Source of the DNA: Phallusia mammillata
Taxonomy: Eukaryota
Reading direction: 5' to 3'
Length of the DNA: 64,000 nt
NCBI GenBank assembly: GCA_965637545.1
Contig: OZ281498.1
Coordinates: 10,726,001-10,790,000 of the forward strand
A model generated the notes under the pieces. It was not told the origin of the DNA and made no database searches. It saw only the letters and a program-made list of their open reading frames with translations. The first letter of the stretch is position 1; every line of letters starts with the position of its first letter. Below, in pieces: positions 21,511-62,246 of the stretch. Both the position numbers and the translations under genes were made by a program.

Positions 21511-22911
21511 TTACGTGGTTTTCAAGACACGAATGCGGTAAACTTGATTTGCCCATGATCCTCCTTCACCGTCATGTCCACAGTTAGTGCTAGCTCCATA
21601 TTTGTTGTAAGTCAGATCGGCGTCAGGTGCTCCAGCGCACCAACCACCGTGTTGCAGTGCAAAGACTTCATATCCTCGCGCATGCGCAGCTTGAATACAT
21701 TTGGCGATGGCGTCGCGGCGTGAGCCGTAACTTCCGTCCAGGACTGGGTCGAGTCCCTCAAGTGTCGTAATGGCACGATTTGATGTGTCTCTCCAACACC
21801 CGAGATTGTCAAGAACAACTGAAAACAAAAATATGTTGTTCGTTTATTCAATTTCATGAAAACATTTCTTATTATGACATAATAGGTTGAACGATTTTTT
21901 GTCGTTGAAATATTTTTGTGTTTTCACCCATAGCTTCTCACCTTCGGAAATAGAGGCGATTTCGTAAACCTGATTGGCCCAACTACCCCCTTCACCGTCA
22001 GACCCACATCCGCTGCTTCCCCCATATTTACGGTAAGTATCACGGGCTGTGGATGAACTGGCGCACCAACCTCCGTGCTAAAAGAAAGAAATAGCAAAAA
22101 TTATCGGAAAATAATTCTATTTAACATATAAACTGATAACATATATTTGAAAACATTCTGCTACAGAGCTCGAATTGACCATGATATTTAGGTTTCAGTT
22201 TTATGTCTAGTGTTGTTGATGATGACACATTTGTTTTTCAACAACTGTCGCGTTATTAGGAAAATTCTTGTAGCAATCCTTAATTTTGCTTGACAGTTTA
22301 ACGAATAAAAATGTTTTGATATAAAAGGATGAAGCCAACAAATGATAAGTAAGCTGTCGACAGTGTACAGCGTGTCGACCTAAAGGGTTTCATCAGTGCA
22401 GCTGGTGACAAGAGATAAGCCGTATTGGCTTGTGTTGCCATCTAACGGTACAGCAGTTTGTTTTGAGTATCATATTTTCATCAAAAAATCGTGTTTTTGC
22501 GTTACCTGAAGAGCAAATACGTCATCGCCATGGTTGTGAGCGACTCTGGCGCATTTTGCAATCGCGTTGGATCTTGAACCGTAGCTGCCATCAAGAATAG
22601 CATCTCCTTCTCTCGTAGGAATTGCTCTGGTCCCGGTGTCTTCCCAACATCCGAGATTGTTGTAAGTAACTACATCAAAAAATTGCATAGTTATGAATCC
22701 AATACTTTAAATTAGTCAACAGCTTGTTGATTATAAAGATATGTTTACTCGCATTGTGAGTTGAATATGCATCAACCTATTTTAACAATTTGTACGGATG
22801 TAACTACTTTGCACTTTTGGTTGTTACACCATTTAATTTACCTGGGTAATAAATCACTGCGCTTGCAGCCCCAATGAAAACATACGCGATTGTCAAACTG
22901 AATATCTTCAT
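21511..22911 (-). CDS. W1: secreted protein with two WSC-like domains, 225 aa, intact
   Basis: Coding exons 22911-22842, 22669-22506, 22077-21942, 21818-21511 (678 nt, GT-AG, in phase). Signal peptide MKIFSLTIAYVFIGAASA; two repeats of GCWxD..RAI...EG...LDGSY..R..AIAKC..FALQHGGWC..Y.KYG....C..DGEGGSWANQVY. Confidence 0.88.
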
Positions 22912-23139
22912 CGTAACTGAAACAAAATAAAGATGTATGAATAAACCAACTTTGATTTTTAAATAACAAAATCATATTTAATACCGTTGAAATCGTATGC
23001 TGTTGCATTTCGGTCTAAGTGCTGACATTAAATATTACTTTGTTGAAATGCAGTAATAATTAGATTTATTGTAGAAAAATGTTACCTTTTGTAGACAGTC
23101 GACTTGTGACGGTTTCTCAAAGTAAAGTTGTTGTTGATG

Positions 23140-23311
23140 AGTCGATGAAACTGATGATTTTGCTCAACAAACCTCCACTCTTTTATATCAGTAACTTGGT
23201 AATTTCCGTCGGTTCTCCAGGCACCTTTTCTTGCTTGTAATGCAGTGGTTATTGACTCACTCGCCTGGTCGAGTTGTTTACGCTCAGATATATTTTCCTC
23301 CGGCAATTCCC
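23140..23311 (-). promoter_or_regulatory. Core promoter of W1: TATA box, Inr-like TCAGT, AP-1 and kB-like motifs
   Basis: TATAAAA on - at 23187-23181, TGAGTCA on - near 23253-23259, GGGAATTGCC on - at 23311-23302. A non-coding first exon ends at a GT donor near 23084. The layout is conserved in all five paralogs, but the exact AP-1 heptamer occurs only in W1-W3. Confidence 0.55.
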
Positions 23312-23857
23312 TGTTGTTTTTCGATGCAAAGTGAAAATTGTAAGTACTTCGAAAATCTTGACGAAAACCGGTCCTGGATAAACACAGTCGAAATCACCCT
23401 GGTGGTGTTTTTGCCAGTTTCGAAAAAACAAAAAGACGAGTTTCGGAAATCTCTGCCTTTGCTCGAAACCAAGCTGTAGTTTTCCACCTTGTCAAGCTAA
23501 TTGCATGTGCGACGAAATCTTCATCATATCTTTATATTGCTGTTTCAACATGTAGCAGCTTATAAATCAATTTGCAATGGAAAACTATTGTAATGTAAAG
23601 GTATGCTGTTCTGCTTAAAGTACAATGTTACATGATCAACGAAACTTTGCAAAACGCACTTGATAAATATCATTTAAATATTTGACTGTGATGCAAAGTT
23701 TCCTAAAGACGCCAAAAATATTATGTCTATTTGTAAGTCCTGCTTTGTAAATATGTGGTAATGGGTTTGAAAGCACACGACAGGAACATATAGGGTAATT
23801 TTTTTAAATGTGCTATTCTGTAAATGTGTGACAATGGGTTCGAAAGCACAACACAGG

Positions 23858-24667
23858 TGTGGCGAAAATATTTCACCTTTAGTTATTTAAGTACACTGTA
23901 CATCATTTGGTATTTGCTTTCGTTTGGTTTGTTTCACATTTTAAAACATGTTTATTTGTGTGTCGTCTCCACAATTGTTTCACATTAATGTGTTTGCTTA
24001 TGTTTCACTTATGTCTAGCTTAAAAATGCGTTTCACCTTTATTACCTTTTTTTAACGTTATTCACACCTTTGTCTTTCTTTCACTCAAACCATATATTTT
24101 CACTTATCGTTGATTCGTTGCTTTGATTTGTTTGTCCCACCGTTTGTTTTAGTTTGCCTCGCCAGTTTCATTTTTCACGCATTATTGTTCTGCCGCATTT
24201 TCTCAGTAATCACCACTCCCGGGTGTGCCTGATAACCTAATCGTATGGAGGACCGTGATTGGTCAATCGCCTATGTGTCGAGGTCGGCATGTAATCGTTG
24301 CATAAGGAGAGGCAGTCTTCTTGTGGGCGTCTAGTGTGCGGTCGTTTTCCTTGTGACGTTGTTTTGATGTGCAGTGGTAGTTCTCAGGTGAAGAGACCTG
24401 GTTTGTTGACGTTTGTGTAACGTTGTACGTGTTTTATCCTATAATATAATACACTGTGAGACGCCCGTTTAGCAAAACCAGTGTTAGGTAGATCCGGCTT
24501 TCGTGGTGAGCCGTTATTGCAGGGTTCTGGACTGTTTACAGAATTGGGGAGACAGTCTCGGGGAATAGAGCAGATTGGCAGGGCTTTTGGGACTTATTTG
24601 GCAAAGATAATACCGCCACCCGAAATCGCTAGACCCAATTCCGGGCTGTCAAAACAATGCGGTAACA
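23858..24667 (+). mobile_element. Solo LTR (810 bp), copy 1
   Basis: TGT...ACA ends with 4-bp TSD CAGG (23854-23857, 24668-24671). The empty site ACACAGGCATTTATCAACG is visible at 53797-53815. Confidence 0.9.
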
Positions 24668-24683
24668 CAGGCATTTATCAACG

Positions 24684-27600
24684 TGTAACCGAAATTAGTT
24701 AGGTGATCCCGAATTTGGCCTAAGATTTTGGGGAAAGGCGAGATAGTTATCTTTTACTAAATAAAACAAGCTTACCCAACCCTGACCACAAATATAGCGT
24801 GATCACCGCCCCTAACTTGGTAAAAACCAGGTCACCCTGCACTAACGGCTTACCGCTAAAACCAAAGTTGAGATGGTCACACCGAACAGGGCCTCAACTA
24901 AAACAAGTTTAATAAAATATATAAAAGGCGATAACACTAAATAACGAGCGCCTTTCAACGTTTCAACACAATACGATACAATACAAAATCCAGCGCTACC
25001 ACGTTCTTCCACTGCACTTACAAGTCACAACACTGCGTACCACACGAGGCCCAAGCGAGAACTGCCTCAAATCTAAAACGAAGCACGGCAGGCACAAAGT
25101 CACGTGATCTCTGCGTCCAATTACAACGTACAGGTGCGACACGTCGACGTCCAAATCATTGGTTCGAGACAATTGATAAAGGAAGCGAATGTAGCGGTAC
25201 ATTAAAACGTGTGAATACATAACGTGAAAACGCAAATACAAACGATTATAACGTTAAATAAAAGTGTGAGTGGTAAACATTATGAAAAGTGTGCGTGGTA
25301 AATATTAACAACATTGTGAAAACAAGGTACATTAAAACAAAGAGTGTAAAAAATCATTAGGAAAACAACTGTGAAAATAAAGTAACAAACTTATGAAACA
25401 TTAATTATTACCGGTGCAGGAATAAAACAAAGAAAATAACAATGTGCGTACGCGCTCATTACACACCCCCTCTCAGTTCACGTCCTACACCGTTAGGACT
25501 AGACATTAGGATAAAACACAGTTTGTCGCCGATTTCGCCTCGGTCGCAGATCTTCCAATCGTTCAGCCACATTCTGTATGTCTGCGCCCAATCCGGTATC
25601 ATCATCGACGGGCGCAGCATTTCCCTTGCCGCTGTCTTCATGGTTTTCGTCTTCACTTGGTTCGCTTTCAATAGGTTCGTCTTCAGCGCCTTCGTCTTCA
25701 ACTTCCTCACGCCCCGTCGCTCTTTGCATAGCACTGTTGTCATTGGCAGTTGGAACCCAAAAGTGACTGCCTGCTTGTGGGACATTGTTCTCGGTTGTTG
25801 GATTTTCTTCCCCACTCTCTTCTTGTCTGTTGTACTCCATGTCGACCTTTTTGAACCTGTTGTAGTGCACTGTTTGAATCGCACCTTGTTCGTCCTGAAT
25901 CACATGATTAACTGTGCCTTGTGTTGCTACAATTTTAAAAGGACCTTTGTAAGGTTGCAAAAACTTACGACAACCATCTTTTGCCACCACCGTGTTTTCC
26001 AAAAGGACGATATCACCCTCTCGTAATGGTGCGCCATAGATTTTCTTATTGTATCGTTGCTCCATTTGTTGCCTCTGCACTTCTAATGTTTCGCGCGCGA
26101 CCTCCTCCGCAAGCAATAGTCTGGATCGCAATGCTTCCAAATGCACGAATGGCTGGGTAGCTCTTGTTGGTCGCGACGAGATGAGGTCTGCCGGTAAGCG
26201 CAGTTGATGACCTGTTAACAGAAAATGTGGGGATAAGCCAGTACTTTCGTGGCGACTAGCATTGTATGAAGCCACGACCGCCGATAGCGCCTCGTCCCAC
26301 CTCTTGGGATCGCGCTGTACATAGTTGCGAAGCATCGAAATGATCGTACGGTTATTTCTTTCGACGCCGCCGTTTCCAGCTGGGTGGTAAGCTGTCGTGC
26401 GGCTTTTAGTACACCCCATCAACCGCACCAGTTCTGCAAACAATTCGCTTTCAAAGTTCCCGCCACGGTCAGAGTGTATAATCTCCGGGACGCCATGGAC
26501 CGTAAGCCACCTGTGGAACAAAATACCCGCAGTTTCATGAGCACTCTGGTGTCGCATCGGCCATGCTCGAACATACTTGGTAAACAAGTCACAGGAAACT
26601 AAAACATACTGATACCCAGACCTGGTCAGAGGCAAAGGCCCCAAAACATCGATCTCGATTCTTTGCATTGGTCGCACTTCTTGTGAAGGTACCAGATGTG
26701 CTCGTATGGTCGTGCTGGGTTTCTTGTTCATATTGCACATGTTGCATCTCCGACAGTGTGCCTCGGTGTCCTTCCTCCACTGAACCAGTAAAAACGTTCA
26801 GATATTTTTCCTAAAGTTTTGGCGATACCTAAATGTCCTCCACCAAGCGCCATGTCATGGCAAGCGGTTAACACGTCTTCCCGCATGGAGATGGGTACGA
26901 CGAGTTTGGTTACTTCTTCAGAAGCCTGAGTAACACAGTTATCGTAAATAAACAGCATATTATCACGACATGTTAACTTGCTAAAAACACTCCAGAAATG
27001 CCTGGACTCGGCGGATAGATGCTTAACATTACGAAACGACGGCCTAATACCTCGTTGAACCCAAGATAACACCGGTTTGAGATGTTGATCGGTGTGTTGG
27101 GCTTCTACAATCGTCGACAAATTATACCCAGATACATCTCTTAAATCAACTGAAAATACCTCGGTCTGTGCTCCCCCATCCACGATCACATACGGAAACC
27201 CATCATCTTCAGGAACACGGCTCAATGCATCGGCATTCGAATGTTTGGTTCCCGGTCTGTGAGACATCTCAAAATGGTAGGCGGCCAAGTGTTCTACCCA
27301 ACGTGCGCACTGACCATACAATTCGCGAGATCGCCAAAGCCATCGTAACGACGAGTGATCTGTTCGAAGAAGAAAGTTTTTGCCCAACAAGTAACAACGA
27401 AAAAGTTTGGTCGCAAAAATAACTGCTAACAGCTCTTTACGGGTAGTGGAGTAATGCCTTTCCGCTATACTCAAAAGTTCGACTTCCGTATGCTACCACG
27501 TGCTCCTTTCCATCGATCACCTGTCCAAGAACACAACCAACAGCATTACCGGAGGCATCGGTATCTAACACAAACCGCTTTGTAAAATCTGGATAACGCA

Positions 27601-30600
27601 GCACAGGAGCTGCGGCAAGCGCTAGTTTTAATGATGAAAACGCTTGTTGACATTGATCAGTCCATATAAAACGGCAGCCTTTTTCGGTTAATTTATGTAA
27701 GGGAGCAGCAATAGATGCATAGCCTTTTACAAACTTGCGGTAGTAGGATGTTAAGCCTACAAATTGACGCACATGTTTGACACTCCTCGGGATCGGCCAT
27801 TCTTTGACAGCCCGAACCGTATCGGGATCACATAAAATACCTTGCTTTGAGACAATGTGACCGAGGAATCGCACTTCATCTTTAAAGAGGTCGCATTTTG
27901 AAGGTTTGAGGGTTAACCCAGCTTTGATCAACCTTAGAAGAACATCCTCCAGACGACGCATATGTTCATCGAAGCTCCTGGCGTAAATAATGATGTCATC
28001 TAGATATGCCAGCGCATCCTGCCATTCAATGCCCTGCAGTACAATTCGCATTAATCTCTGAAAACTAGCCGCAGAGTTACATAAGCCCATCGGCATGACG
28101 TTGAACTCAAAAAGGCCCATGTGACTAGCGAATGCAGTCTTTTCTCGTGAACGTTCATCCATTGGTATTTGCCAATAGCCGGATTTTAGGTCTAGCGTCG
28201 AAAAATACACGGAACCGGACATTTCGTCTAGGCTGTCATCGATCCGCGGTATCGGATAGCTATTTTTCTTAGTAACTTCATTCACCTGACGATAATCAAC
28301 ACAAAAGCGTAGCTCACCACTCTTCTTTTTCACCAAAACAATGGAACTGGACCATGGAGATGTCGAAGGGCGAATCAGTCCTTGTTCTCGCATTTCCCCA
28401 ATTATGTTCTCCACTTGTTGCTTATGGGTTTGGGCCATATGTCGTGGTGGTTGACGAACAGGTGGGGCATCGCCGGTGTCGATAACGTGACGCGAAATAC
28501 TGGTTCGTCCAAGGTCTAAACTAATTGTTGAAAATGCATTCTGGTGACGGCGTAGAAGATTCAAAACTTCATTTAATTGACTGGAATTGATCCCCGAGCC
28601 GATGGTAACTCCGTCTCGGACGGCCTTCCAGTGTTCTCCGTCGTTCGGTACTCTTTCATCTTGACCCTTCTGCGAAACAATGCACACATCGGTCAACCTT
28701 TGTGAACGCCACGCATTTCTGCATACACATTTATCATGGGAACTTTGACCGATAAACGCAACATTCATGTATTAGACTATCAATGTGACCATAAGCATGC
28801 ACCGGTGTAACTGTAGCTATGCGGGTCCCGTCAAGCACATCGATCGTCTCATCGCTAAAGTTAGCCAGACGAACTTTAACTTTATTACCTTTGACTACGC
28901 CCAAACAGTTTCGTAGACCCGTCCGTTCACAAAAACGCTTCGTAGACCCGTCCGTTCACAAAACTCCTCGTTACGGCTTACTAACACGGAAAAAGTAGGA
29001 ACAGTTTTAGGATACAATCATAAGGTAAGCTTGTGGCCACGTACACAACAGAACTTACATCTAAATCTCCTAATTTAATGGAGATAGTGGCTTTACCCAA
29101 AACGTTTATGGACTTGCCCGTGACTCCCGAGAGGTATTCGTCATTCCCGAGGGGAACCAGTTTGCTGTCGACCATCTTCTGCTTAATAACATCCCACAAG
29201 CGTTGGTTTGAAATGGTAACGGAGGCACCAGTGTCAACCAATGCACAAGTGACAACACCTCCTGTCATCATATTAACAAACCGGGGTAATGTCTTTTTAA
29301 CAATATGCTTACGGCCAGAACCGGCCGATGTAGGTTTGGAAGGTCCTAAGGGTTTGCTTGGTCCTCTCGGTCTCGGTCTGTGGACACTTTTAGAAAAGGT
29401 TTAGAAAACGTGGAACTTTGGTACATTCTATCACGTCTTACACCACTGTATTGCTCACCATATCTGCAGAACCGACGTAAATGACCAACCTCACCACAGC
29501 CATAGCATCGGGGTTGTTCTTTAAAGACGCCTCTCCCCGGGCGATATCCGCCAGCTGGAAATTGATTGGGTCCTGAACGCCTCATCACGAATTTGCTTCA
29601 CGTCAGCTTGGAGCGCCGAAACTGCGTCAGCCAGCGCTTTAGAATTGTCTTGCCATTCTTTCCTGAGGTCCTCAATCAGCTGAAGTTGTGGGTCGTTTTT
29701 CAACGTTTTTTTCACCGGCATTACTGGTAATGGACCCTGGCTCGTAGTTCCAATCACACATTCGGCCACAGACTAAAAGTCACGTTTGTATCCTAGCTGT
29801 TTAGGAATGTTAATAGCCGCTGACTGATCAGCTAAATCAAGCAATAGTAAGGAGTACAACACTTCGTTTCGGACTGACTCGTCCTTAGGATATGCTTTGT
29901 CTGCCATTGCCTTCAAAGCATAGACAAATTCCTTGTTAGATTCCTGGGGCAATTGCCGCCGGCGAAACAAATTAGCGCGCATCTGATGCAAAATCACGTC
30001 GCTCTTGTTTAATTTTCGCACACGTTCAATGATCTGTTCGTAAGTCAGTTCAAACACGCAGCTGTCCTTTCCTTGCACTGACCAACGCAAGTCGTCATCA
30101 ATGGTTGTTAAAAACATGTGGCGCTTTACTTCCTCCGATGCCTTCACGCTGTTGCAGTACGAGTCAAACTGCGTTATAAACCCATCTACATCCATTCCAG
30201 GCGTATACCGCGGAGGAGTTATAAAAACGTTAAAAGCCATGTTAAAAAGTAAAACTGTAAAACACTAAAACTATACAAAAAGTTGAGATGGTCACACCGA
30301 ACAGGGCCTGAACTAAAACAAGTTTAATAAAATATACAAAGACGATAACATTAGATAACGAGCGCCTTTCAACGTTTCAACACAATACGATACAATACAA
30401 AATCCAGCGCTACCACAAGCGAACTGCCTCAAATCTAAAACGAAGCACGGCAGGCACAAAGTCACGTGATCTCTTCGTCCAATTACAACGTACAGGTGCG
30501 ACACGTCGACGTCCAAGTCATTGGTGCGAGACAATTGATAAAGGAAGCGAATGTAGCGGTACATTAAAACGTGTGAATACATAACGTGAAAACGCAAATA

Positions 30601-30846
30601 CAAACAAATATAACGTTAAATAAAAGTGTGAGTGGTAAACATTATGAAAAGTGTGCGTGGTAAATATTATCAAAATATGAACAAATATTAACAACATTGT
30701 GAAAACAAGGTACATTAAAACAAAGAGTGTAGAAAAACATTAGGAAAACAATTGTGAAAATAAAGTAACAAACTTATGAAACATTAATTATTACCGGTGC
30801 AGGAATAAAACAAAGAAAATAACAATGTGCGTACGCGCTCATTACA
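24684..30846 (-). mobile_element. Gypsy (Ty3) LTR retrotransposon, defective copy A
   Basis: 3' LTR at 24684-25463 (TGTAA...TTACA), PPT GAGAGGGGG next to it, gag-PR-RT-RH-INT order on -. The 5' LTR (~30281-30846) has lost its U5 end and PBS through a ~245-bp deletion relative to copy B. Confidence 0.95.
25499..30240 (-). pseudogene. gag-pol: Fragmented gag-pol of Gypsy copy A
   Basis: CYGCGEVGHLRRFC knuckle, LVDTGAS protease, YLDD RT, LDTDAS RNase H, HLG..C..C and HSDRG integrase, GPF motif. Has the lesions shared with copy B plus extra frameshifts near 26785, 29390 and 29580. Confidence 0.93.
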
Positions 30847-33719
30847 CAACCAACAGCAGTCTTCCTCCGTTGCAACCGATACAACCTTGCGTGCCACAGT
30901 AAATTTATTAAAAGATGTAACAGTCACCACACAACCCCCTACTTCCAAACGTCGTGGGGCCACGTCTCTTAGACAATTCGTCTCTTAGACAAACCCGATG
31001 CAACATACAATTGGATTTATGACAAATAATTCAGCTTACTCTAGTATTAACGTGTGTTTCACTAGCTTACAGAACAAATATAGGCGGTCTGCAGTGTAGC
31101 GTTTCATATAATCTTTCCATATGTCACCGAGCGTGCAAAAATCGTGTAATCAAAGTCAATTTATGTTTATGTAACTGTTATAGAATAAGAACAAATTGAA
31201 CAATTGAATAAGTTAAGTTAAAGGTATTCAGATTAAAGCAGGAATAATTTTGAATTTATCAAACAAGAAGCAAACCAAATGGTGCAAAAACAAATCAAGT
31301 AAACAGTACCTGGTCAGTGACCTTGATGGAACCTGATGTTTTTTGCACGTACTTACATACTTGCGCAACACGTTCGTGGTTTTAAGAGCTCCTGCCACGC
31401 CATATAACCCACATTATGTAACGAATTAATGTTTGAAGTGCAAAAATGCATATCCGAAAATAGCTTTTGACAACTGTGCTATCGTCAAACATGTTTTTGT
31501 GAGGTTTTTTTTACCGAGCTTCGCACGCAATCAGCAAAAAAAAGTTCGCACTTACTCCTGCGAGTAAATGTCATTCTCTTTAAAATATTTTTTACCTCTA
31601 AGAGTTTTGCAAGTTTTAAAGGGGTTTCATCGTCAGGTTGAACAGTTGTATACTTTTCGAGCAAGATGTGGAACTTCAAATTCGTTTTGCTGTGTCTTCT
31701 ATTTGCTTCAATTGCTGTTGTAACTTGCCATTTCATGGACTCCGTGGCAAACAAGTAAGGCTTTAATACCTTCATTAAAATTTGTTTTTGAAAAAAAGGT
31801 GATCATTAAATTGGTTTGGTCATCAGACTTTTATAATTCGGTGATAAGATAAAATTAGCTTTTGACGAAAGCACCTGAAAGCATAACTATTAATATAAAG
31901 CTCACGGTGACCGGCTGATTCGGTATAAGGCCTTTAATAAGCCTACCGTATTAAGATTTCTATATGGGTGCGCTCTGATTGTTGGTCTGCATAAACGCTT
32001 CAGAGCTGATTCCAGTTATGAATTTGTGTACATCTTAATCATTATTACATACCTTTTACGTTGTGAACACAAAAATGTGTTTATTTCAATAGGTGGCGCG
32101 CGGTAGACCTGCAGCACTAAATGATGACCTAACTGTGCAAGAAAAGTTCGACTTTTACCAAGAAGAAAATAAAGCCTAGAAGTAGCAACAAGATTTTGCA
32201 AACTCGTAATAGTAATGTTACAAAATGTCTTTCCAAAATAAAACATGATACAGGTCTTGTACATACAGTGGTGTGGTGAAGAGGATTTTTGAGCAACAAT
32301 AAATTGTAGGTCTTTTGGTTAAAGATTTAAGATAAGGCAAGATTAATATGATCAAACTGAAATACAGCATAACAAAGTGCATGACAAAGCGGAATTAAAA
32401 CGATTTTTTTATAAAGCTAAATAACCGTCTGGTGCAGAAACGCTGCCGATTGTATAACTTTTACGATCAGCTTGTTGTAATTGCAAAACTTTAGATCAGG
32501 GGTCAGCAACCTTATCATGTTTGTGACACACCAAACGATTTGCAAAATTATGTTCCTCTTGGTACAAAATGCACGGTTCTAAATATTTTTAGGGCAAAAG
32601 CCCCGTTATGAGAAATAAAATCAACAGAAGGGATGCAACTTGGTGCCGTACAACAATAAAACAATGAGTAACGCAAACTTAAAGATAAAGCAATTATGCG
32701 AATACATTTACCTATATTTGATGCAATTCAAGAAAATGCGTTGCTGGTTTCCAGCAGTTATATGATGCAAGTCCAAGTATGGAGTAGTCGTGGGACCACG
32801 TTTCGTTGACAATCCGTTACCGCGATGCAAATTTCAGTTGCATTTATGACGTTAGTTGACCGTAAATCGTCCAGCGTGCAAAAATCGTTTAATCATCGTC
32901 AATTTCTGTTTAAGTAACAGTTATAATAAAGCACACATTAACAATTGAATGAATTAAGTTAAATTTATTCAAAATAAAGCAGGAATTATTTTGAACTTGA
33001 TAACAATAAGGACCAAACCAAATAGTACAAAAACAAAGCAAGTAAGCAGGTGTAATCGACGACGTGACCTTAAAGCACCCGTTGCTTTTTGCTCGTAATT
33101 ACATACTTGCTTAACACGTTCACAGTTGTAAGAGCTCTGGTTACGCCACATAACTCACATTACCGAATCCTAAATATCGAAACGCACCGTTCTACCGTAC
33201 CGTACCTTCAGATACACCAATCTGGATCAGGTCGGATAGATTTTATGACATGCACTTAAAGGAGAGGTGTCCAAACAAGCTGCCCCACTACAAAACCAGC
33301 TTTCGAAATAAAGGTTGATGTGCTTTCTATGATGGGTTCGGTCAGAGACAGTGTGTGTTATATATTCAACTGCATGTTTTTTAAAGTCAAATCATTACTG
33401 CGAAAGAGACTACAACACTAGCTAGCTTTTTTTTAACTAACTTGAGAATCAATTCCACATGTCAAATTAATTTCTGATTTTGTCATGTGGGCGTTTTAAT
33501 TAGGCCTACAGCGTGTTTAACCCTCATTTTGCATAGCGGTCAGTCCGTAAGCACAAAATATTAAGCAGTGACCTCATAAACATTTTTGAATCCTCTTTTG
33601 GAACAGGGACATTGTGATGAAATCAGTTCATAAACCTATCAAATCCAAGTTTTTGATATTTTTTATATTATCTGCAAATGTTAGCGATCCAAAAATGACC
33701 GTTTAGATAATTTTTATCA

Positions 33720-33852
33720 CGGTCGTACGGTACGCTTTTGGTACGGTGGTACGCACTGGTGAAGCACCGTACCACATACCGTACCCATACCTCAGCTTTC
33801 TTGGCGTACCGCACCACAGTACCGTGCTGAATTTTTCTACGTACCCTACAGC
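33720..33852. repeat. GTACC/GGTAC-rich degenerate repeat patch, probably a non-autonomous element remnant; second copy at ~50938-51069
   Basis: Dense CGTACC/GGTACG motifs in both orientations; only a short trace exists at ~21058 in segment S1. Confidence 0.45.
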
Positions 33853-34277
33853 CATCCTTTTCCAGTAACCAGCTACTTAGCTAGGTAATTTTATTTAAAA
33901 ACATGTACGAATAAAAAGTCCGGCCCGATTCAAGCCCTCAAAATAGTGTTTGTGACTTGGTTCAAATGTTTGCGTTTCTCAATGCGAGCACTTTTATAGT
34001 CTATCCAGTTTTCTTATACAGCTGCATAAAATTGAAGCCGCACAAGTTAACACAATTATATTGCGTTAGTGTATTATTTTTAATGAAATGTACATAAACC
34101 GAAAACACTTAGGACGTTTCTGAAAATCAGATGTTGATCTTTAAAGAAGTAATTACTTCTTCCCATTATAGGTTCTGAAAAAATAAAGATTTTATTTACT
34201 TGTGGCGATGGTAAGTTTAAACCGATATAACATATGTTTCACAACATTGATTTGGATCACTGAAAAAATACAGACAA

Positions 34278-35674
34278 CTAATATTTCCCACGAATGCGGT
34301 AAACTTGATTTGCCCATGATCCTCCTTCACCGTCATGTCCACAGTTGGTGCTTGCTCCATATTTGTTGTAAGTCAGATCGGCGTCAGGTGCTCCAGCGCA
34401 CCAACCACCGTGTTGCAGTGCAAAGACTTCATATCCTCGCGCATGCGCAGCTTGAATACATTTGGCGATGGCGTCGCGGCGTGAGCCGTAACTTCCGTCC
34501 AGGACTGGGTCGAGTCCCTCAAGTGTCGTAATGGCACGATTTGATGTGTCTCTCCAACACCCGAGATTGTCAAGAACAACTGAAAACAAAAATATGTTGT
34601 TCGTTTATTCAATTTCATGAAAACTTTTCTTATTATGACATAATAGGTTGAACGATTTTTTGTCGTTGAAATATTTTTGTGTTTTCACCCATAGCTTCTC
34701 ACCTTCGGAAATAGAGGCGATTTCGTAAACCTGATTGGCCCAACTACCACCTTCACCGTCAGACCCACATCCGCTGCTTCCCCCATATTTACGGTAAGTA
34801 TCACGGGCTGTGGATGAACTGGCGCACCAACCTCCGTGCTAAAAGAAAGAAATAGCAAAAATTATCGGAAAATAATTCTATTTAACATATAAACTGATAA
34901 CATATATTTGAAAACATTCTGCTACAGAGCTCGAATTGACCATGATATTTAGGTTTCAGTTTTATGTCTAGTGTTGTTGATGATGACACATTTGTTTTTC
35001 AACAACTGTCGCGTTATTAGGAAAATTCTTGTAGCAATCCTTAATTTTGCTTGACAGTTTAACGAATAAAAATGTTTTGATATAAAAGGATGAAGCCAAC
35101 AAATGATAAGTAAGCTGTCGACAGTGTACACCGTGTCGACCTAAAGGGTTTCATCAGTGCAGCTGGTGACAAAAGATAAGCCGTATTGGCTTGTGTTGCC
35201 ATCTAACGGTACAGCAGTTTGTTTTGAGTATCATATTTTCATCAAAAAATCGTGTTTCTGCGTTACCTGAAGAGCAAATACGTCATCGCCATGGTTGTGA
35301 GCGACTCTGGCGCATTTTGCAATCGCGTTGGATCTTGAACCGTATAGCTGCCATCAAGAATAGCATCTCCTTCTCTCGTAGGAATTGCTCTGGTCCCGGT
35401 GTCTTCCCAACATCCGAGATTGTTGTAAGTAACTACATCAAAAAATGGCATAGTTATGAATCCAATACTTTTAATTAGTCAACAGCTTGTTGATTATAAA
35501 GATATGTTTACTCGCATTGTGAGTTGAATATGCATCAACCTATTTTAACAATTTGTACGTATATAACTACTTTGCACTTTTGGTTGTTACACCATTTAAT
35601 TTACCTGGGTAATAAATCACTGCGCTTGCAGCCCCAATGAAAACATACGCGATTGTCAAACTGAATATCTTCAT
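34278..35674 (-). pseudogene. W2: frameshifted WSC-like paralog
   Basis: Same exon layout as W1. A 2-nt TA duplication in exon 2 (CGTATAGCTG at ~35341 versus CGTAGCTG in W1 and W3) shifts the frame, and a 26-bp deletion changes the C-terminus to RIRGKY*. Confidence 0.85.
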
Positions 35675-43080: not shown

Positions 43081-43097
43081 TCCTGGCGTGCTCGCCA
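43081..43097 (-). other. Primer-binding site of Gypsy B (TGGCGAGCACGCCAGGA)
   Basis: Lies 2 nt inside the 5' LTR. The + strand TCCTGGCGTGCTCGCCA resembles the 3' end of metazoan tRNA-Arg(ACG); tRNA identity is inferred from memory. Confidence 0.7.
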
Positions 43098-51100: not shown

Positions 51101-51494
51101 GGTAATTTTATTTAAAAACATGTACGAATAAAAAGTCCGGCCCGATTCAAGCCCTCAAAATAGTGTTTGTGACTTGGTTCAAGTGTTTGCGTTTCTCAAT
51201 GCGAGCACTTTTATAGTCTATCCAGTTTTCTTATACAGCTGCATAAAATTGAAGCCGCACAAGTTAACACAATTATATTGCGTTAGTGTATTATTTTTAA
51301 TGAAATGTACATAAACCGAAAACACTTAGGACGTTTCTGAAAATCAGATGTTGATCTTTAAAGAAGTAATTACTTCTTCCCATTATAGGTTCTGAAAAAA
51401 TAAAGATTTTATTTACTTGTGGCGATGGTAAGTTTAAACCGATATAACATATGTTTCACAACATTGATTTGGATCACTGAAAAAATACAGACAA

Positions 51495-52863
51495 CTAATA
51501 TTTCCCACGAATGCGGTAAACTTGATTTGCCCATGATCCTCCTTCACCGTCATGTCCACAGTTGGTGCTAGCTCCATATTTGTTGTAAGTCAGATCGGCG
51601 TCAGGTGCTCCAGCGCACCAACCACCGTGTTGCAGTGCAAAGACTTCATATCCTCGCGCATGCGCAGCTTGAATACATTTGGCGATGGCGTCGCGGCGTG
51701 AGCCGTAACTTCCGTCCAGGACTGGGTCGAGTCCCTCAAGTGTCGTAATGGCACGATTTGATGTGTCTCTCCAACACCCGAGATTGTCAAGAACAACTGA
51801 AAACAAAAATATGTTGTTCGTTTATTCAATTTCATGAAAACTTTTCTTATTATGACATAATAGGTTGAACGATTTTTTGTCGTTGAAATATTTTTGTGTT
51901 TTCACCCATAGCTTCTCACCTTCGGAAATAGAGGCGATTTCGTAAACCTGATTGGCCCAACTACCACCTTCACCGTCAGACCCACATCCGCTGCTTCCCC
52001 CATATTTACGGTAAGTATCACGGGCTGTGGATGAACTGGCGCACCAACCTCCGTGCTAAAAGAAAGAAATAGCAAAAATTATCGGAAAATAATTCTATTT
52101 AACATATAAACTGATAACATATATTTGAAATCCATGATATTTAGGTTTCAGTTTTATGTCTAGTGTTGTTGATGATGACACATTTGTTTTTCAACAACTG
52201 TCGCGTTATTAGGAAAATTCTTGTAGCAATCCTTAATTTTGCTTGACAGTTTAACGAATAAAAATGTTTTGATATAAAAGGATGAAGCCAACAAATGATA
52301 GGTAAGCTGACGACAGTGTACACCGTGTCGACCTAAAGGGTTTCATCAGTGCAGCTGGTGACAAGAGATAAGCCGTATTGGCTTGTGTTGCCATCTAACG
52401 GTACAGCAGTTTGTTTTGAGTATCATATTTTCATCAAAAATCGAGTTTTTGCGTTACCTGAAGAGCAAATACGTCATCGCCATGGTTGTGAGCGACTCTG
52501 GCGCATTTTGCAATCGCGTTGGATCTTGAACCGTAGCTGCCATCAAGAATAGCATCTCCTTCTCTCGTAGGAATTGCTCTGGTCCCGGTGTCTCCCCAAC
52601 ATCCGAGATTGTTGTAAGTAACTATATCAAAAAATGGCATATTTATGAATCCAATACTTTAAATTAGTCAACAGCTTGTTGATTGTAAAGATATGTTTAC
52701 TCGCATTGTGAGTTGAATATGCATCAACCTATTTTAACAATTTGTACGTATATAACTACTTTGCACTTTTGGTTGTTACACCATTTAATTTACCTGGGTA
52801 ATAAATCACTGCGCTTGCAGCCCCAATGAAAATATACGCGATTGTCAAACTGAAAATCTTCAT
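51495..52863 (-). CDS. W3: secreted two-WSC-like-domain protein, open frame, variant C-terminus RIRGKY*
   Basis: Four coding exons equivalent to W1 with intact splice sites; shares the 26-bp 3' deletion with W2 but not the frameshift. Confidence 0.83.
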
Positions 52864-55140
52864 CGTAACTGAAACAAAATAAAGATATATGAATAAACCG
52901 ATTTTTAAATAACAAAATCATATTTAACACCGTTGAAATCGTATGCTGTTGCATTTCGGTCTAAGTGCTGACATTAAATATTACTTTGTTGAAATGCAGT
53001 AATAATTAGATTTATTGTAGAAAATTGTTACCTTTTGTAGACAGTCGACTTGTGACGGTTTCTCAAAGTAAAGTTGTTGTTGATGAGTCGATGAAACTGA
53101 TGATTTTGCTCAACAAACCTCCACTCTTTTATATCAGTAACTTGGTAATTTCCGTCGGTTCTCCAGGCACCTTTTCTTGCTTGTAATGCAGTGGTTTTTG
53201 ACTCACTCGCCTGGTCGAGTTGTTTACGCTCAGATATGTTTTCCTCCGGCAATTCCCTGTTGTTTTTCGATGCAAAGTGAAAATTGTAAGTACTTCGAAA
53301 ATCTTGACGAAAACCGGTCCTGGATAAACACAGTCGAAATCACCCTGGTGGTGTTTTTGCCAGTTTCGAAAAAACAAAAAGACGAGTTTCGGAAATCTCT
53401 GCCTTTGCTCGAAACCAAGCTGTAGTTTTCCACCTTGTCAAGCTAATTGCATGTGCGACAAAATCTTTATCATATCTTTATATTGCTGTTTCAACATGTA
53501 GCAGCTAATAAATCAATTTGCAATGGAAAACTATTGTAATGTAAAGGTATGCTGTTCTGCTTAAAGTACAATGTTACATAATCAACGAAACTTTGCAAAA
53601 CGCACTTGATAAATATCATTTAAATATTTGACTGTGATGCAAAGTTTCCTAAAGACGCCAAAAATATTATGTCTATTTGTAAGCCCTGCTTTGTAAATAT
53701 GTGGTAATGGGTTTGAAAGCACAAGACAGGAACATATAGGGTAATTTTTTTAAATGTGCTATTCTGTAAATGTGTGACAACGGGTTCGAAAGCACAACAC
53801 AGGCATTTATCAACGTACTTGCTATTTAGCGTGCAGACAAAGTCTTGTTAATACTCGAATCTTTTTACAACACTATATTGTTATATTAACTGAATTAACT
53901 CGAAGATGACAATATGAAATCGTTTAAACAAAAAAACAACTTTGTACATTGGTACAGCTGACAAACGATTGTCAGAATGGCAATAAACACAGCCCATTGT
54001 GGCAATGGTAATATACCACAACGTAACAACTCAACGCAATTTTCCCAACTTGTAGTTCAACGGTCAAGCGGCTTTAAAGGTCAAAGTATTGACGTCGCTC
54101 AAATCGAAAGTTTCGCATTGAAGTTTCGCCTAGTTTGTGCGTCGTGACTCTCTCCATACCTGGGAATGTTGAAATGAGGTTTTACCAATGGGGTTTCGTG
54201 TGCTTAATTTGCTGAAAAATTCAAATTCCATCCAAAACAAATGATTTTAATTTAAGACATGTGGGGGAATATGTAAACAAAAACGTGATGATGCCCCTTG
54301 ATATGCCGTCATTGTGACGTTAGTCAGCTGTTTTCGCTTACGCAAACGTGCGGAAAAGTACCACACCGGCACTTTACTTCATTTCCGAGTTTTGCAAGGT
54401 GACAAGCGGTGCGAGTTTTTCTATGGTTGTTTTTACCTCGCCTCTATCATAACCGAGCATTTTCGACAAACTTGGAAGTTGGGCCACGAAGTCCCCGTAA
54501 AGGCATTAGTCTGCTGTATGAATGTACAAAGCTGTTTTTTGTTGAAACCATTTTATACATCCATTGTCATCTGAGAGTTATTTCAATTAAGATAACAATA
54601 TAGTGTCGTAAAAAGATTCGATTATTAACAAGACTTTGTCTGCACCTTTAATAGCAAATTCGTCGATAAAAAATTGCCCTATATGTTCATGTCTTGTGCT
54701 TTTAAACCCATTATCACATATTTACAAAGCAGGACTTACAAATAGACATAATATTTGTGAAACTTTGCATCACAGTCAAATATTTAAACGCTATTTATCA
54801 AGCGCTATGTTGTTTAATAGATCATGTAACGTTGTACTTTTAGCCGAACAGCACGCCTTTACACTACAATATTTTTTTCCATTGCAAATTGATTTATTCT
54901 CTGCTACAAAAAAAGCAACATAGACATATGGTGGAAATTTTTGTGGCACATGCAATTGGCTGGGTAGACTGGAAAATTACAGCTTGGTTTGGAGCAAAGG
55001 TAGAAATTTTCCGTAACTTGTTTTTTCGAAACTATGTAAAACACCACCAGGGTGATTTTGACTGTGTTTTTCCAGGACCGGTTTTCGTCGAAATTTTCGC
55101 ACAAGCATTTACTTCTTTGACTTTGCATCGAAAAACGACT

Positions 55141-55537: not shown

Positions 55538-57050
55538 ATGAAGATTTTCATTTTGACCATCGCGTGTGTTTTCATTGGGGTTGCAAGCGCAGTGACGTAT
55601 TACCCAGGTAAGAAAAAATGGCGGGACACATAACAGTGCAAACTTGTTATAATCGGAAACGCAAAATTGTGTAACTAGGCTAATGAATATCCAACTTATG
55701 ATGCCAATGCGACTTTCGAGTTAATAAAGCTTTACTTTAAAAAGTGGATGACTAATTTTTAGTCGTGTATTCATAATTTTGCCATAAACAAATCTTCGTC
55801 GCATAGTTACTTACAACAATATCGGATGTTGGAGAGACCAAGCGATAAGAGCACTTACGTCAAGAGAAGGGGATCCTATTCTTGATGGCAGCTTCCAATC
55901 AAGATCCAACGCGATTGCAAAATGCGCCAGAGTCGCTCACAACCACGGTGATGACGTATTTTCTGTACAGGTAATGGTTCGTTGACCTGTGTATTGTCAT
56001 AAATGTCCGCTACGAATTTAAGATAAATTGGTCCATGAGATATTCTTTATTGACGCTTTAGTGTAGGAACCGTGCATTCAAGATCACAAAAAGTACAAAC
56101 AACCACCAGCAAACACAATGTATTCAAATGGTAGTTTGTTTAGGTTAATATATCCCTTGTTGTTTGCAAAACGAGTTATATCTGCTTGTAAGTTAAAGTT
56201 AGCTAAGGCTCACAATTCTTATACATATGTATACAAACAGTAATGTTGAAATCGACCCCTTTTGAAGTAAAATCGTCCCCCAATTTCCAAAAGTGTCACC
56301 ATCGCCCTCTCGGTAGTCGTAATCGCCCTGTTGAAGAACCCTGCTTTTGTTACTTCATTCATAAAATAAGAAACCAAACTAATCGTCTAAAAATGGCATA
56401 AAATTGCTATCTGCTTCTTACTCAAATAGAACCGCTATAAATAGTCTATTTGTTTTTCAGGCAGGTGGTTGGTGTGCCAGTTCACCCACATCCCGTGGTT
56501 TTTACCGTAAATATGGTGTGAGCAGCGCATGTGCAGCTGACGGTGAAGGTGGTGATTTGGCCAATCAGGTTTACGAAATCGCCTCAATTTCTGAAGGTGA
56601 TTGTTCGGTCAAGTTATGTAATTACTTTTCGAAGCGAAAATTGTTTGTGTAAAATATTTTTCATTCAGGAAACTAATTTTACCCATAATACAGTTTGATC
56701 AAATAAAACAAAATAAACAACTTATTACATTTTAATCGTCAGTTTCGCTTGTTAATCTCGGCTGTTGGAAAGACACACCATATCGTGCCATTCCAACACT
56801 TGAGGGACTTGACCCGGTCCTGGACGGAAATTTTGGCTCACGTCAGGACGCGATCGCCAAATGTGTGCAAGCTGCTTATGCGCGAGGCTATAAGGTCATT
56901 GCATTACAAGCCAGTGGTTGGTGCGCTGGAGCACGTGACGCCCGTCTGACTTAAAAAAAATATGGACCTAGCACCATCTGTGGACTTGACGGTGAAGGAG
57001 GAACGTGGGCCAATCAAGTTTACCGCATTCGTGTCTTGAAAACCACGTAA
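55538..57050 (+). pseudogene. W4: WSC-like paralog with premature TAA at 56952-56954
   Basis: Exons start at 55538, ~55805, 56461 and ~56742. ACT TAA AAA AAA TAT versus ACA TAC AAA AAA TAT in W5 removes the last ~31 aa, including the fourth Cys of domain 2. Confidence 0.8.
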
Positions 57051-59911: not shown

Positions 59912-60075
59912 GGGAATTGCCGGAGGAAAAACATCTCCGGACGTAAACAACCCGACTAGGCGAGTGAGACAAAAACCACTGCATTACAAGCAAGAAAAGT
60001 AGCCTGGAGCACCGACGGAAATTACCGAGTTACTGGTATAAAAGAGTGGAGGTTTGTTGAGGAATATCACCAGTT
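59912..60075 (+). promoter_or_regulatory. Core promoter of W5
   Basis: GGGAATTGCC at 59912-59921, TATAAAA at 60037-60043, downstream CAGTT Inr-like motif; same spacing as W4. Confidence 0.55.
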
Positions 60076-60309
60076 TCATCGACTCATCAACAACAACCTT
60101 CCTTTAAGAAATCGTCAGAAGTCGACTGTCTACGCAAGGTAACACTTTTCTACAATAAATCTAATTATTATTTCATTTCAACAAAGGTAATTTTATTGTT
60201 AGCACTGAGACCTTAATTCAACAGCATACGACTTCGACGCTGTTAAATATGATTTTGTTATTTGAAAGTCAAAGTTGTTTATTATTATTTTTGTTTTGTT
60301 TCAGTTACG

Positions 60310-62246
60310 ATGAAGATTTTTATTCTGACCATCGCGTGTGTTTTTATTGGGGCTGCAAGCGCAGTGACGTATTACCCAGGTAAGATAAATGGCGGGACAC
60401 ATAACAGTGCAAACTTGTTATAATCGTAAACGCAAAATTGTGTAACTAGGCTTATATGCATATCAAACTTACGATGTCAATGCGACTTTCGAGTAAATAA
60501 AGCTTTAATTTGAAAAGTTGATGGCTAATATTTAGTCGTGTATTCTTAATTTTGCCTTAAACAAATTTTCCTCGTCTAGTTACTTACAACAATCTCGGAT
60601 GTTGGAGAGACCAAATAATCAGAGCACTTTGGTCGAGAGAAGGAGATGCTATTCTTGATGGCAGCTACCAAACAAGATCCAACGCGATTGCAAAATGCGC
60701 CAGAGCCGCTTACAAACATGGCGACGACGTATTTGCTCTTCAGGTAATGCTTCGTTGACCAGTGTTGTGGTCATAAATGTTGGTCCATGTGATATGTTTT
60801 ATTGACGCTTTAGTGCAGGAGTCTTCAACCTTTTTGGCTCAATTTTTGGCCTTTCAAGGGCACTGGCTCAAAATCGACTCCCTATGAGATTAATTCTTGC
60901 CTTTTGAGCTGATGTGGGCGGTTAGATTCACCTAGCAACACGAAATCTTCCATTACCAGTTAATGTCTAGTTTCATTGCTACTACAATAGAACAGACAAA
61001 GTCTATCAATTCTTCTAACCGCTAACGCACCTGACAATAATTTGTTCAACCATAGATAAAACAATATTACGAATACATGAAACAAATGCCTTCTTTTGTT
61101 GAAAACAATTACTTGGTAGAGGATAATCTAAAATTATACAAATTCTTCGCAGTTTGGGAAGCGCTTGTAGGCCTATAGGAAGTGTGAAAGCGAAACAAGT
61201 TTGAGGTAAAGCTCGTTACCGCTGTTTTCAAAAAGTATGGCCCGTTACTACACATAGCCTTAATAAACGTGGCATAAGAAATGCTCAACCTTGCTTTCGA
61301 GATCACAAAAAATACAAACAATCGCAAGTAAACACAATGTATTCAAATGGTAGGTTGATGCATCCCTTGTTTGCAAGACGAGTTATATCTGTTAGTAAGT
61401 TAAAGTTAGCTGAGTCACACAGTTCTTGTACATATTTATACAATCAGTAATCGCCTCCTTTTGAAGTAAAATCGTCCCCCAACTTCCAAAATTGTCACCA
61501 TCGCCCTCTCGGTAGACGTAATCGCCCCGTTGTAGAAACCTGCTTTTGTGTCTTCATTCATGAAATAACAAACCAAACAAATCGTTTAAACATAGCATGA
61601 GACTTTATTTGCTCCTTGTTCAAATATAACCTCTATAAATAGTCTATTTGTTTTTTCAGGACGGCGGTGGGTGCGGCAGTTCACCCACAGCTCGTGGTTT
61701 TTACCGTAAATATGGTGTGAGCAGCGCATGTGCAGCTGACGGTGAAGGTGGAAATTTGGCCAATCAGGTTTACGAAATCACCTCAATTTCTGAAGGTGAT
61801 TGTTCGGTCAAGTTATGGAATTACTTTTCGAAGCGTAAATTCTTTGAGTAAAATATTTTTCATTCAGGAAACTAATTTTATCCATGATATATTTTGATCA
61901 ACTTAAACAAAAACAGAAGCAAATTATCAAATTTTAATTGTCAGTTTCACTTGTTAATCTCGGTTGTTGGAAAGACACACCATATCGTGCCATTCCAACA
62001 CTTGAGGGACTCGACCCAGTCCTGGACGGACATTTTGGCTCACGCCAGGATGCGATCGCCAAATGTGTGCAAGCTGCTTATGCGCGAGGTTATAAGGTCA
62101 TTGCATTGCAAGCCAGTGGTTGGTGCGCTGGAGCACGTGACGCCGCTCTGACATACAAAAAATATGGACCTAGCACCATCTGTGGACATGACGGTGAAGG
62201 AGGAACGTGGGCCAATCAAGTTTACCGCATTCGTAAAACGACGTAA
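60310..62246 (+). CDS. W5: secreted two-WSC-like-domain protein, 223 aa, intact
   Basis: Exons 60310-60379, 60580-60743, 61660-61795, 61945-62246 (672 nt, in phase); signal peptide MKIFILTIACVFIGAASA. Confidence 0.88.
60816..61290. mobile_element. Probable truncated hAT-type insertion in W5 intron 2
   Basis: ~480 bp absent from the W4 intron; starts CAGGAGTCTTCAACC (hAT-MITE-like end). No matching second terminus was found. Confidence 0.4.

Follow-up and report, generated by a model that had tools for sequence, protein, structure and literature searches.

What kind of protein does a sea squirt encode in a tandem row of small, partly decayed genes, and what might that protein do? The window, by which is meant the whole 64-kb stretch of Phallusia mammillata DNA analyzed here, contains five gene copies (hereafter W1-W5), located by tblastn with W1's own exons as query. 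On balance, the array probably represents tunicate genes for secreted proteins of ~220 aa, each made up of a signal peptide and two divergent WSC domains that bind glycans or polysaccharides outside the cell. A cellulose synthase in which GT2 and GH6 domains are fused is a marker of tunicates, and this genome has a GT2 domain (C3:28483890-28484498, minus strand) fused to a GH6-like domain (C3:28480812-28481030, minus strand), the two lying 3 kb apart. The copies in the window are as follows:

21511..22911, minus strand: W1, open gene (tblastn and exon reading)
22842-22911, 22506-22669, 21942-22077 and 21511-21818, minus strand: W1 exons for the signal peptide, domain 1a, domain 1b and domain 2, respectively
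34278..35674, minus strand: W2, broken copy (frameshift and lost donor)
51495..52863, minus strand: W3, reading frame intact (tblastn and exon reading)
55538..57050, plus strand: W4, broken copy (nonsense codon in domain 2)
55538-55607, 55807-55970, 56461-56596 and 56743-57050, plus strand: W4 exons, those other than domain 2 intact
60310..62491, plus strand: W5, open and transcribed (tblastn and RNA contigs)
60310-60379, 60580-60743, 61660-61795 and 61945-62242, with a terminal exon from 62482, plus strand: W5 coding exons

All five share one architecture, in which four coding exons yield a signal peptide and two domains of ~95 aa, and every intron is GT..AG. Exon 1 (70 nt, ending in phase 1) encodes MKIF(S/I)LTIA(Y/C)(V/I)FIG(A/V)ASA, a signal peptide predicted from its sequence: the N-terminus is basic, the hydrophobic core spans 12 residues and ASA precedes the expected cleavage site. 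The N-terminal half of domain 1 is encoded by exon 2 (164 nt, phase 0) and the remaining half by exon 3 (136 nt, phase 1); domain 1 is interrupted by an intron, whereas domain 2 lies entirely within exon 4. Searches took the exons individually, and domain 1 was thus covered as two separate halves. In W1 the domain-2 exon has a conserved donor, AC/GTAAGT, immediately before an in-frame TAA. A 2-bp TA insertion near 35344 gives W2 an exon 2 (35267-35432) of 166 rather than 164 nt and shifts its frame. A 26-bp deletion common to W2 and W3 takes the final codons out of the domain-2 exon, along with its splice donor; domain 2 of both therefore ends in RIRGKY and a stop. W4 carries a TAC>TAA nonsense change at 56952-56954, inside the domain-2 YxKYG motif, and DNA run X4 shows no alternative letter at this site. 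The sequence-only reading had described five paralogs, each a signal peptide plus two repeats and nothing else, with three open (W1, W3 and W5), one frameshifted and one nonsense copy, and tblastn and exon reading agree with it. It also took the array to run past position 64000, and five further domain-2 exons indeed lie 4-34 kb beyond the window end (G000:C5:10794435-10823420).

Are these genes expressed? The possibility that the family lacks spliced transcripts can be set aside, since RNA contigs show W5 to be transcribed and spliced as modelled. Spliced contigs cover its exons 2-3-4 with 0 mismatches in runs X1 and X7, and the GT..AG joints are seen in X1, X2 and X7, i.e., in three runs from two studies. 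The domain-2 donor AC/GTAAGT is used, two bases before an apparent stop, and the terminal exon adds two residues to give ...KTTTY, followed by the stop TAG at 62489-62491 and an AATAAA near 62565. Upstream lies a further candidate exon:

59972..60139, plus strand: probable 5' untranslated exon of W5 (paralog RNA contig, acceptor 60309)

This exon ends at a donor, AAG/GTAACA, and stretches homologous to it are present upstream of W1-W4. The RNA contig concerned joins 59972-60142 to 60309-60377 with ~7% mismatches to W5; it must therefore derive from a paralog. The AG acceptor found just upstream of each ATG was considered as a spliced-leader acceptor; the paralog-derived contig instead contains a cis-spliced upstream exon, which makes a spliced leader less likely for W5.

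Each domain of W1-W5 contains exactly four Cys, in the contexts GCW, AKC, GWC and xxC, together with the YxKYG and DGEGGxWANQVY motifs. The four-Cys repeats and their motifs are thus as first read from the letters, with domain 1 of W5, which has GGC in place of GWC, as the sole exception. Canonical WSC domains have eight conserved Cys that form four disulfides, C1-C6, C2-C4, C3-C5 and C7-C8 (PMC9024836). Across 46 aligned family members no more than four Cys are fully or almost fully conserved, and alignment to a canonical eight-Cys WSC exon from the same genome identifies them as C1, C2, C4 and C6. By this alignment the bridges C1-C6 (strand 1 to the long loop) and C2-C4 (helix to strand 4) would be kept, and C3-C5 and C7-C8 would be lost. 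In place of the CGG motif of WSC nearly all members have (D)GEGG, which retains the glycines and has Glu where the Cys would be.

How secure is the relationship to WSC? All 46 aligned members match Pfam WSC (PF01822) and no other family (best E 4.7e-7), and neither they nor the window copies give a Pfam match to PF00024 (PAN/Apple). The window copies reach 16.9-21.3 bits (E 3e-4 to 7e-3) against a gathering score of 27.8, whereas divergent paralogs elsewhere in this genome, on C2 and C4 (28-32 bits), and the foreign homologs P0176 and P0197 (34.9 and 31.6 bits) lie above this cut-off. The Pfam comparison proposed from the sequence therefore singles out WSC as the only family, and places paralogs and homologs, but not the window copies, within its formal limits. 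When the family alignment was run as a profile against PDB sequences, no WSC chain was reached and the matches were all by chance (sugar isomerase-type proteins, E >0.4); homology to WSC therefore rests on the fold and the bridging paralogs.

The AlphaFold model of domain 2 (pLDDT 92.7) has a PAN/Apple-type core with a long C-terminal loop around it, and the solved structures closest to it are WSC domains. Foldseek returned E <0.02 and a probability of 1.00 solely for Kremen1, Wsc1 (7pz2) and Fusarium glyoxal oxidase. VIA-align gave WSC proteins Z scores of 11.2, 10.7, 10.6 and 9.6 (Kremen1 11.2, the glyoxal oxidase WSC 10.6, Wsc1 9.6), with 83-90 residues aligned at 2.2-2.5 A rmsd in the best WSC matches; PAN/Apple structures follow after a gap, at Z 3-5.2. 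Neighbours of the domain in the ESM Atlas are WSC or PAN clusters, and the nearest clusters are mostly cnidarian. Domain 2 is thus predicted, from its model, to have the WSC fold, and the description of the repeats as WSC-like with four Cys finds support in both the fold searches and Pfam.

Relatives of the domain occur in ascidians, amphioxus, an acorn worm, a brachiopod, corals and a sea anemone, and the family comprises 2581 clusters at 50% identity. A word-based protein search found four-Cys relatives 54-67% identical; it covers proteins of 58-184 aa for this query and consequently returned mostly exon-sized frames of unannotated eukaryotic contigs, with one named species. Named relatives were found by alignment profile and include Branchiostoma XP_078580859 (38 repeats), Styela clava XP_039248870 (14 repeats), Clavelina CAK8682276, Lingula XP_023933275, Ptychodera XP_070545888 and Montipora XP_068699032. 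All those looked up are called "uncharacterized protein", in keeping with the original failure to match the array to any named gene. A literature search on WSC in ascidians or other tunicates (Ciona, Styela, Botryllus, Halocynthia, Oikopleura) or in Branchiostoma returned nothing relevant. The multi-repeat relatives in Branchiostoma, Styela and others have the same four-Cys domain as W1-W5 and are all secreted or extracellular, but they range from 1 to 38 repeats and many carry lectin, VWA, VWD, CUB or ADAMTS modules. Fusions of the domain seen in amphioxus and other animals involve C-type lectin, tectonin, F5/8-C, SUEL, LamG, pentraxin, VWA, VWD, CUB and fn2 domains. The form with a signal peptide and two domains recurs in several phyla, and in Lingula and Branchiostoma proteins the two domains of one protein, compared by eye, are more alike than either is to domains of other species, which suggests repeated internal duplication. 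No vertebrate is among the ~20 named relatives looked up, and our guess would be that vertebrates lack the four-Cys module.

What, then, could the W proteins bind? The WSC domain is a PAN/Apple-type fold with a long C-terminal loop wrapped around it. The W proteins probably work extracellularly, using two heads to bind surfaces made of polysaccharide or glycan. With a pair of binding modules on a single small soluble molecule, they would be expected to coat or cross-link what they bind, not to signal. In a sea squirt, the candidates for binding would be microbial wall glucans, the chitin of gut mucus and the cellulose of the tunic. Roles in sugar binding, immunity, mucus or matrix, as also put forward by the sequence-only reading, are inferred from the fold and from the fusion partners in other animals. 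The Wsc1 structure paper cites fungal WSC proteins that bind beta-glucan (PMC9024836). The same paper describes WSC domains as having no obvious ligand pocket and as mediating both protein-carbohydrate and protein-protein contacts, and notes that the WSC domain of Kremen1 binds the protein Dkk1 (PMC9024836). The W domains might accordingly be protein-binding modules rather than lectins, serving as secreted adaptors or decoys much as the Kremen1 WSC domain engages Dickkopf, and the best structural match is Kremen1 itself (Z 11.2, 25% identity). This seems unlikely to us: the ~55 tandemly duplicating copies are more readily explained by targets in the environment or on microbes than by a single conserved partner in signalling, and the fusion partners in other animals are overwhelmingly lectin domains.

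The P. mammillata genome contains ~55 single-exon domains of this kind. The ~30 loci examined include tandem pairs that are identical or nearly so, a block duplicated from one array to another and several copies that are broken, and the birth-and-death evolution suggested from the five copies in the window extends to this larger set. Open copies have a dN/dS of ~0.34 in all three coding parts; the median pairwise value is 0.30-0.36, or 0.34-0.37 for pairs with dS <1. These ratios place the paralogs under moderate purifying selection. Pervasive positive selection was considered and not found, almost no pairs having dN/dS >1. Positions that vary among paralogs cluster after GCW, around GSYGSR and within GGxWAN. 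Within the window, duplication is most evident around W1-W3:

21081..53803: three tandem units with W1, W2 and W3 (self-BLAST)
24684..30848, minus strand: Ty3/Gypsy-type LTR retroelement in the first unit, reading frames broken into several pieces
37446..43988, minus strand: copy of this element in the second unit
44047..47931, plus strand: second, different Ty3/Gypsy-type element with a single 1294-aa gag-pol frame, in the second unit only

As assembled, the units (~21081-33857, 33858-51074 and 51075-53803) are ~13-17 kb long and 95.7-98.7% identical by self-BLAST. The first Ty3/Gypsy-type element is common to the first two units and must therefore have been inserted before their duplication. 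Such high identity, extending over up to 9.2 kb, and the near-identity of the W1, W2 and W3 domain-2 exons are also what would be seen if the W1-W3 pattern were partly an assembly artefact, in which allelic versions of a single locus, or copies of it that were collapsed and then re-expanded, make the array look larger than it is. We give this little credence, given that the units are set apart by the private retroelement at 44047-47931, the 2-bp insertion and the 26-bp deletion, that all three lie inside one long contig and that identical tandem pairs exist elsewhere in the family; W4, W5 and the other ~50 loci would be unaffected in any case.

Sea squirts are not known to have a venom apparatus, which counts against the W proteins being components of a defensive or venom-like secretion. 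That idea, which we consider very improbable, draws on the mostly cnidarian Atlas clusters, on the "WSC domain proteins, function unknown" listed for Stichodactyla haddoni venom (PMC6627431) and on the two WSC domains of bloodworm glycerotoxin (PMC5336659), yet neither report assigns toxic activity to a WSC domain.

The W domains belong to a distinct WSC subfamily with fewer disulfides, which is plentiful among marine invertebrates and has no functional name in any of the relatives looked up. In the sea squirt it takes the form of ~55 small genes for secreted two-domain proteins; at least one is expressed, and the duplication and decay of these genes continue. If the domains bind glycans, protochordate mucosal or tunic biology would gain a new class of lectin; if they bind proteins, they would be a large set of secreted adaptors. 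Being small and encoded by a single exon, the W-type domain is a convenient module for expression and testing. A bolder proposal, offered tentatively, is that the four-Cys module is an unrecognised ancient animal lectin family, deployed in sea squirts as a large, fast-turning-over repertoire of bivalent soluble receptors. The module is common to cnidarians, brachiopods, hemichordates, amphioxus and tunicates; the receptors could target microbial glycans, or else self material in the form of the cellulose tunic or the chitin-based mucus of the gut, and would then be a pattern-recognition or matrix-organising system beside the VCBPs.

Ascidian VCBPs are reportedly immune proteins, secreted in the gut of Ciona, with an affinity for chitin and bacteria. 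As small secreted multi-domain binders of protochordates they offer a functional analogy only, since their domains (immunoglobulin V and chitin-binding) are unrelated and nothing connects them to the W family. PAN/Apple domains (PF00024; the HGF N domain, factor XI apple domains, apicomplexan MIC4 and SML-2 lectins) have in common with the W-type domain a core in which a five-stranded sheet surrounds one helix, with a helix-to-strand disulfide. However, they reach a Z of 5.2 or less, and the W-type domain lacks the PAN-specific hairpin insertions and has the long wrapping loop of the WSC type. WSC domains are well studied in fungi, as wall sensors, glucan lectins and enzyme appendages; in animals, to our knowledge, they have been studied almost only in Kremen and polycystin-1. 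The W-type domain has the same fold as these proteins (PF01822; Wsc1 7PZ2, Kremen1 5FWS, fungal glyoxal and alcohol oxidases, glucanases and the Serendipita WSC3 lectin) and keeps the GC(Y/W)xD start, the helix, strand-4 and loop Cys, the xGG motif and the final VY, in an extracellular and often tandem setting. It differs in having four Cys rather than eight, with the C3-C5 and C7-C8 bridges absent by alignment, in the replacement of CGG by EGG, in conserved motifs of its own (RAIPTLEG, LDGSY and DGEGGxWANQVY) and in the scores of the window copies, which fall under the Pfam cut-off. Unlike the WSC domains of membrane sensors or enzyme appendages, it is found here in a small, soluble, two-domain animal protein.

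Searching with the translated exons of W1 (tblastn) identifies five genes of a single design in the window, W1-W5, and their exon borders were set by direct reading of the DNA.

The five window genes (tblastn)
21511-22911, minus strand, W1
34278-35674, minus strand, W2
51495-52863, minus strand, W3
55538-57050, plus strand, W4
60310-62491, plus strand, W5

Coding exons of W1-W5
Exon 1, 70 nt, encoding MKIF(S/I)LTIA(Y/C)(V/I)FIG(A/V)ASA-V(I/T)YYP, phase 1 end
Exon 2, 164 nt, first half of domain 1, phase 0
Exon 3, 136 nt, second half of domain 1, phase 1
Exon 4, complete domain 2 in one exon

All introns are GT..AG. The N-terminus, with its basic start, 12-residue hydrophobic core and ASA ahead of the predicted cut, reads as a standard secretory signal, and no transmembrane or anchor segment follows domain 2. 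Each domain carries four cysteines (GCW, AKC, GWC and xxC), except that domain 1 of W5 has GGC in place of GWC. These exon-level models bear out the sequence-only reading, which had described five paralogs of a signal peptide plus two repeats and listed motifs that are indeed present in the W domains: the proteins comprise a predicted secretory signal and two WSC-fold modules, and nothing else.

One frameshifted and one nonsense copy had been reported, and both lesions are present, as a 2-bp insertion (TA) in exon 2 of W2 (166 vs. 164 nt) and a TAC>TAA change in W4 (56952-56954). At the W4 stop, the DNA run X4, possibly the assembly's own source sample, holds a single letter only. The domain-2 exons of W2 and W3 are cut short by a shared 26-bp deletion, which takes the final codons and the splice donor, so that both end RIRGKY*. 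Because of these lesions in W2, W3 and W4, a fully canonical structure is found only in W1 and W5.

Spliced transcripts, on which the sequence-only reading had made its case depend, exist for W5. GT..AG joints at 60738|61655 and 61793|61943, which match the read exon borders after applying the alignment tool's stated offsets, occur in RNA contigs from three runs, X1 and X2 of one study and X7 of a second, and the X1 and X7 contigs show 0 mismatches to exons 2, 3 and 4 over 506-540 nt. These contigs extend past 62243 into sequence placed at 62482, behind a perfect acceptor. This puts the end of the domain-2 exon at AC|GTAAGT, 2 bases ahead of the apparent stop, and the protein ends ...RIRKTTTY*, with an AATAAA near 62565. 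A commoner RNA contig has two junctions, one from an upstream exon (~59972-60139) to an acceptor at 60309 and one between exons 1 and 2. Its ~7% mismatches to W5 mark it as derived from a paralog, and it demonstrates the gene design, not the 5' end of W5 itself. Within the stretch that this contig covers as 5' exon lies the motif TATAAAAG (60030-60050, plus strand). RNA-contig coverage of W4 amounts to 33 nt, from a different gene, and several further runs from this species contain none of the sequence.

Self-comparison of the window resolves W1-W3 into three tandem units that are 95.7-98.7% identical in the assembly.

Tandem units (self-comparison)
~21081-33857, unit A, carrying W1
~33858-51074, unit B, carrying W2
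~51075-53803, third unit, carrying W3

Units A and B contain the same Ty3/Gypsy-type LTR element, which was therefore inserted before the unit duplicated; a second, different element (44047-47931) is confined to unit B. W4 and W5 form a tandem pair, 86-88% identical and inverted relative to W1-W3, that is older than these units. As suspected, the array continues beyond 64000, with five further domain-2 exons in the next 34 kb. Upstream of W1, a copy of the unit spacer (16509-18415) is 80-92% identical to those at 31025-33059 and 48241-50276; it is older, has no adjoining WSC exons and may be what is left of a unit since lost. Upstream of the array there is also a tandem duplication (6161-7149 vs. 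11185-12177 and 9503-10973 vs. 14421-15835, 77-93% identical). The window opens (4-1998, plus strand) with two long open frames, of 469 and 189 aa, that resemble the integrase end of a further retroelement.

The 240-Mb genome carries a GT2 glycosyltransferase exon and a GH6-like exon on one strand, separated by 3 kb (contig C3:28480812-28484498, minus); this fusion is the hallmark of tunicate cellulose synthase and places the genome among the tunicates. The genome contains at least 148 exon matches, ~55 of which by our own count are full-length single-exon domains. Clusters lie on C5, the contig whose positions 10726001-10790000 make up the window, at 3.01-3.08, 10.74-10.82, 11.16-11.21, 19.6-19.8 and 22.4-22.8 Mb, and on contigs C2, C3, C4 and C6. 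The four-exon design recurs across 30 fetched loci, the majority open, among which at least four further copies are damaged (a stop within domain 1 in L012, a frameshift in L020, loss of the first half of domain 1 in L021 and a truncated domain 2 in L013). In a tree of domain-2 exons the 3-Mb and 10.7-Mb arrays interleave by subtype (W1-3/L004, W5/L025, L014/L024, L012/L015), and L016/L017, L007/L008 and L010/L011 are identical tandem pairs. On C5, pairs of members with identical domain-2 exons stand 6-9 kb apart; they arose either by very recent duplication or as duplicates in the assembly.

Identical domain-2 exon pairs on C5
10803638 and 10812671
11167268 and 11175212
11199856 and 11205635, in inverted orientation

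The picture is of a whole array duplicated as a block and then duplicating locally, with duplication and loss ongoing; block duplication, identical or near-identical pairs and damaged loci support the birth-and-death evolution proposed earlier. Pairwise dN/dS among open copies is ~0.34 in all three coding parts and pairs above 1 are almost absent, showing moderate purifying selection; pervasive adaptive diversification is not evident at this pairwise resolution. The family is thus constrained, abundant and turning over, and at least one member is expressed.

Domain searches were run exon by exon, with domain 1 as two exon pieces. The window copies match Pfam WSC (PF01822) alone, at 16.9-21.3 bits against a cut-off of 27.8; more divergent paralogs in the same genome score 28-32 bits, and homologs from other organisms 31.6-34.9 bits. 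All 46 aligned homologs match WSC and no other family (best E 4.7e-7). A domain-2 model built from this 46-sequence alignment (mean pLDDT 92.7) gave Foldseek matches in the PDB at E <0.02 only for Kremen1, yeast Wsc1 (7PZ2) and Fusarium glyoxal oxidase, the rest having E >1. An independent all-against-representatives alignment gave Z scores of 11.2, 10.7, 10.6 and 9.6 for Kremen1, Wsc1 and glyoxal oxidase proteins, the top alignments spanning 83-90 residues at 2.2-2.5 Å, whereas PAN/Apple modules fell well below (Z ≤5.2). ESM Atlas neighbors belong to WSC or PAN clusters. A sequence-profile search of the PDB found no WSC chain, and the homology therefore rests on the fold and the bridging paralogs. 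The four-cysteine, WSC-like character first assigned to the repeats is supported; the strong structural matches of domain 2 are all WSC domains.

When 1.84 billion representatives were searched with a profile, 2581 proteins matched at E ≤1e-3 (287 at ≤1e-30), with 1 to 38 repeats each. The ascidian Clavelina was the only named match in the first protein search; named relatives include Branchiostoma, Styela, Clavelina, Ptychodera, Lingula, Montipora, Oculina and Actinostola. The family had been said to match no named gene, which stands: nearly all relatives are labeled "uncharacterized," "hypothetical" or "unnamed," and one amphioxus entry bears the automatic name "Macrophage mannose receptor 1-like." Lingula, amphioxus and other animals likewise have small proteins made of a signal peptide and two domains, and these two domains often resemble each other more than those of other species, which on sequence reading suggests repeated internal duplication. 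Longer relatives combine the domain with C-type lectin, tectonin, F5/8-C, SUEL, LamG, pentraxin, VWA, VWD, CUB, fn2, Kringle and ADAMTS modules. A literature search found no publication on WSC domains of tunicates or amphioxus. A sea-anemone venom proteome includes WSC-domain proteins without assigned function (PMC6627431), and bloodworm glycerotoxin contains two WSC domains (PMC5336659).

What might such a two-module protein do? Fungal WSC modules bind polysaccharide or glycan surfaces and the fusion partners are mostly of lectin type, from which we infer that these modules would do likewise; a protein with a pair of them could cross-link or coat what it binds. In a sea squirt, microbial walls, gut chitin and mucus, or tunic cellulose would be candidate targets. 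The main rival, that the modules bind protein in the manner of Kremen, whose Kremen1 domain is among the fold matches, is improbable, and a glycan-binding protein that cross-links or coats is the reading we moderately favor.

In the paper on the Wsc1 structure (PMC9024836), what defines a WSC domain is a PAN/Apple core with a long loop wrapping it, a CGG motif and four disulfides, C1-C6, C2-C4, C3-C5 and C7-C8. Aligned to a canonical eight-cysteine WSC exon of the same genome, the family keeps cysteines C1, C2, C4 and C6, lacks C3, C5, C7 and C8, and has EGG at the CGG position; we infer the corresponding cysteine pairing from this alignment. With four of eight cysteines gone and EGG for CGG, the domain is a divergent, reduced-disulfide variant of WSC rather than a canonical member. 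The genome holds both the classical and the reduced forms, as is shown by L036, a canonical eight-cysteine WSC domain in a single exon (contig C1:351842-352150, plus strand, 38.3 bits).
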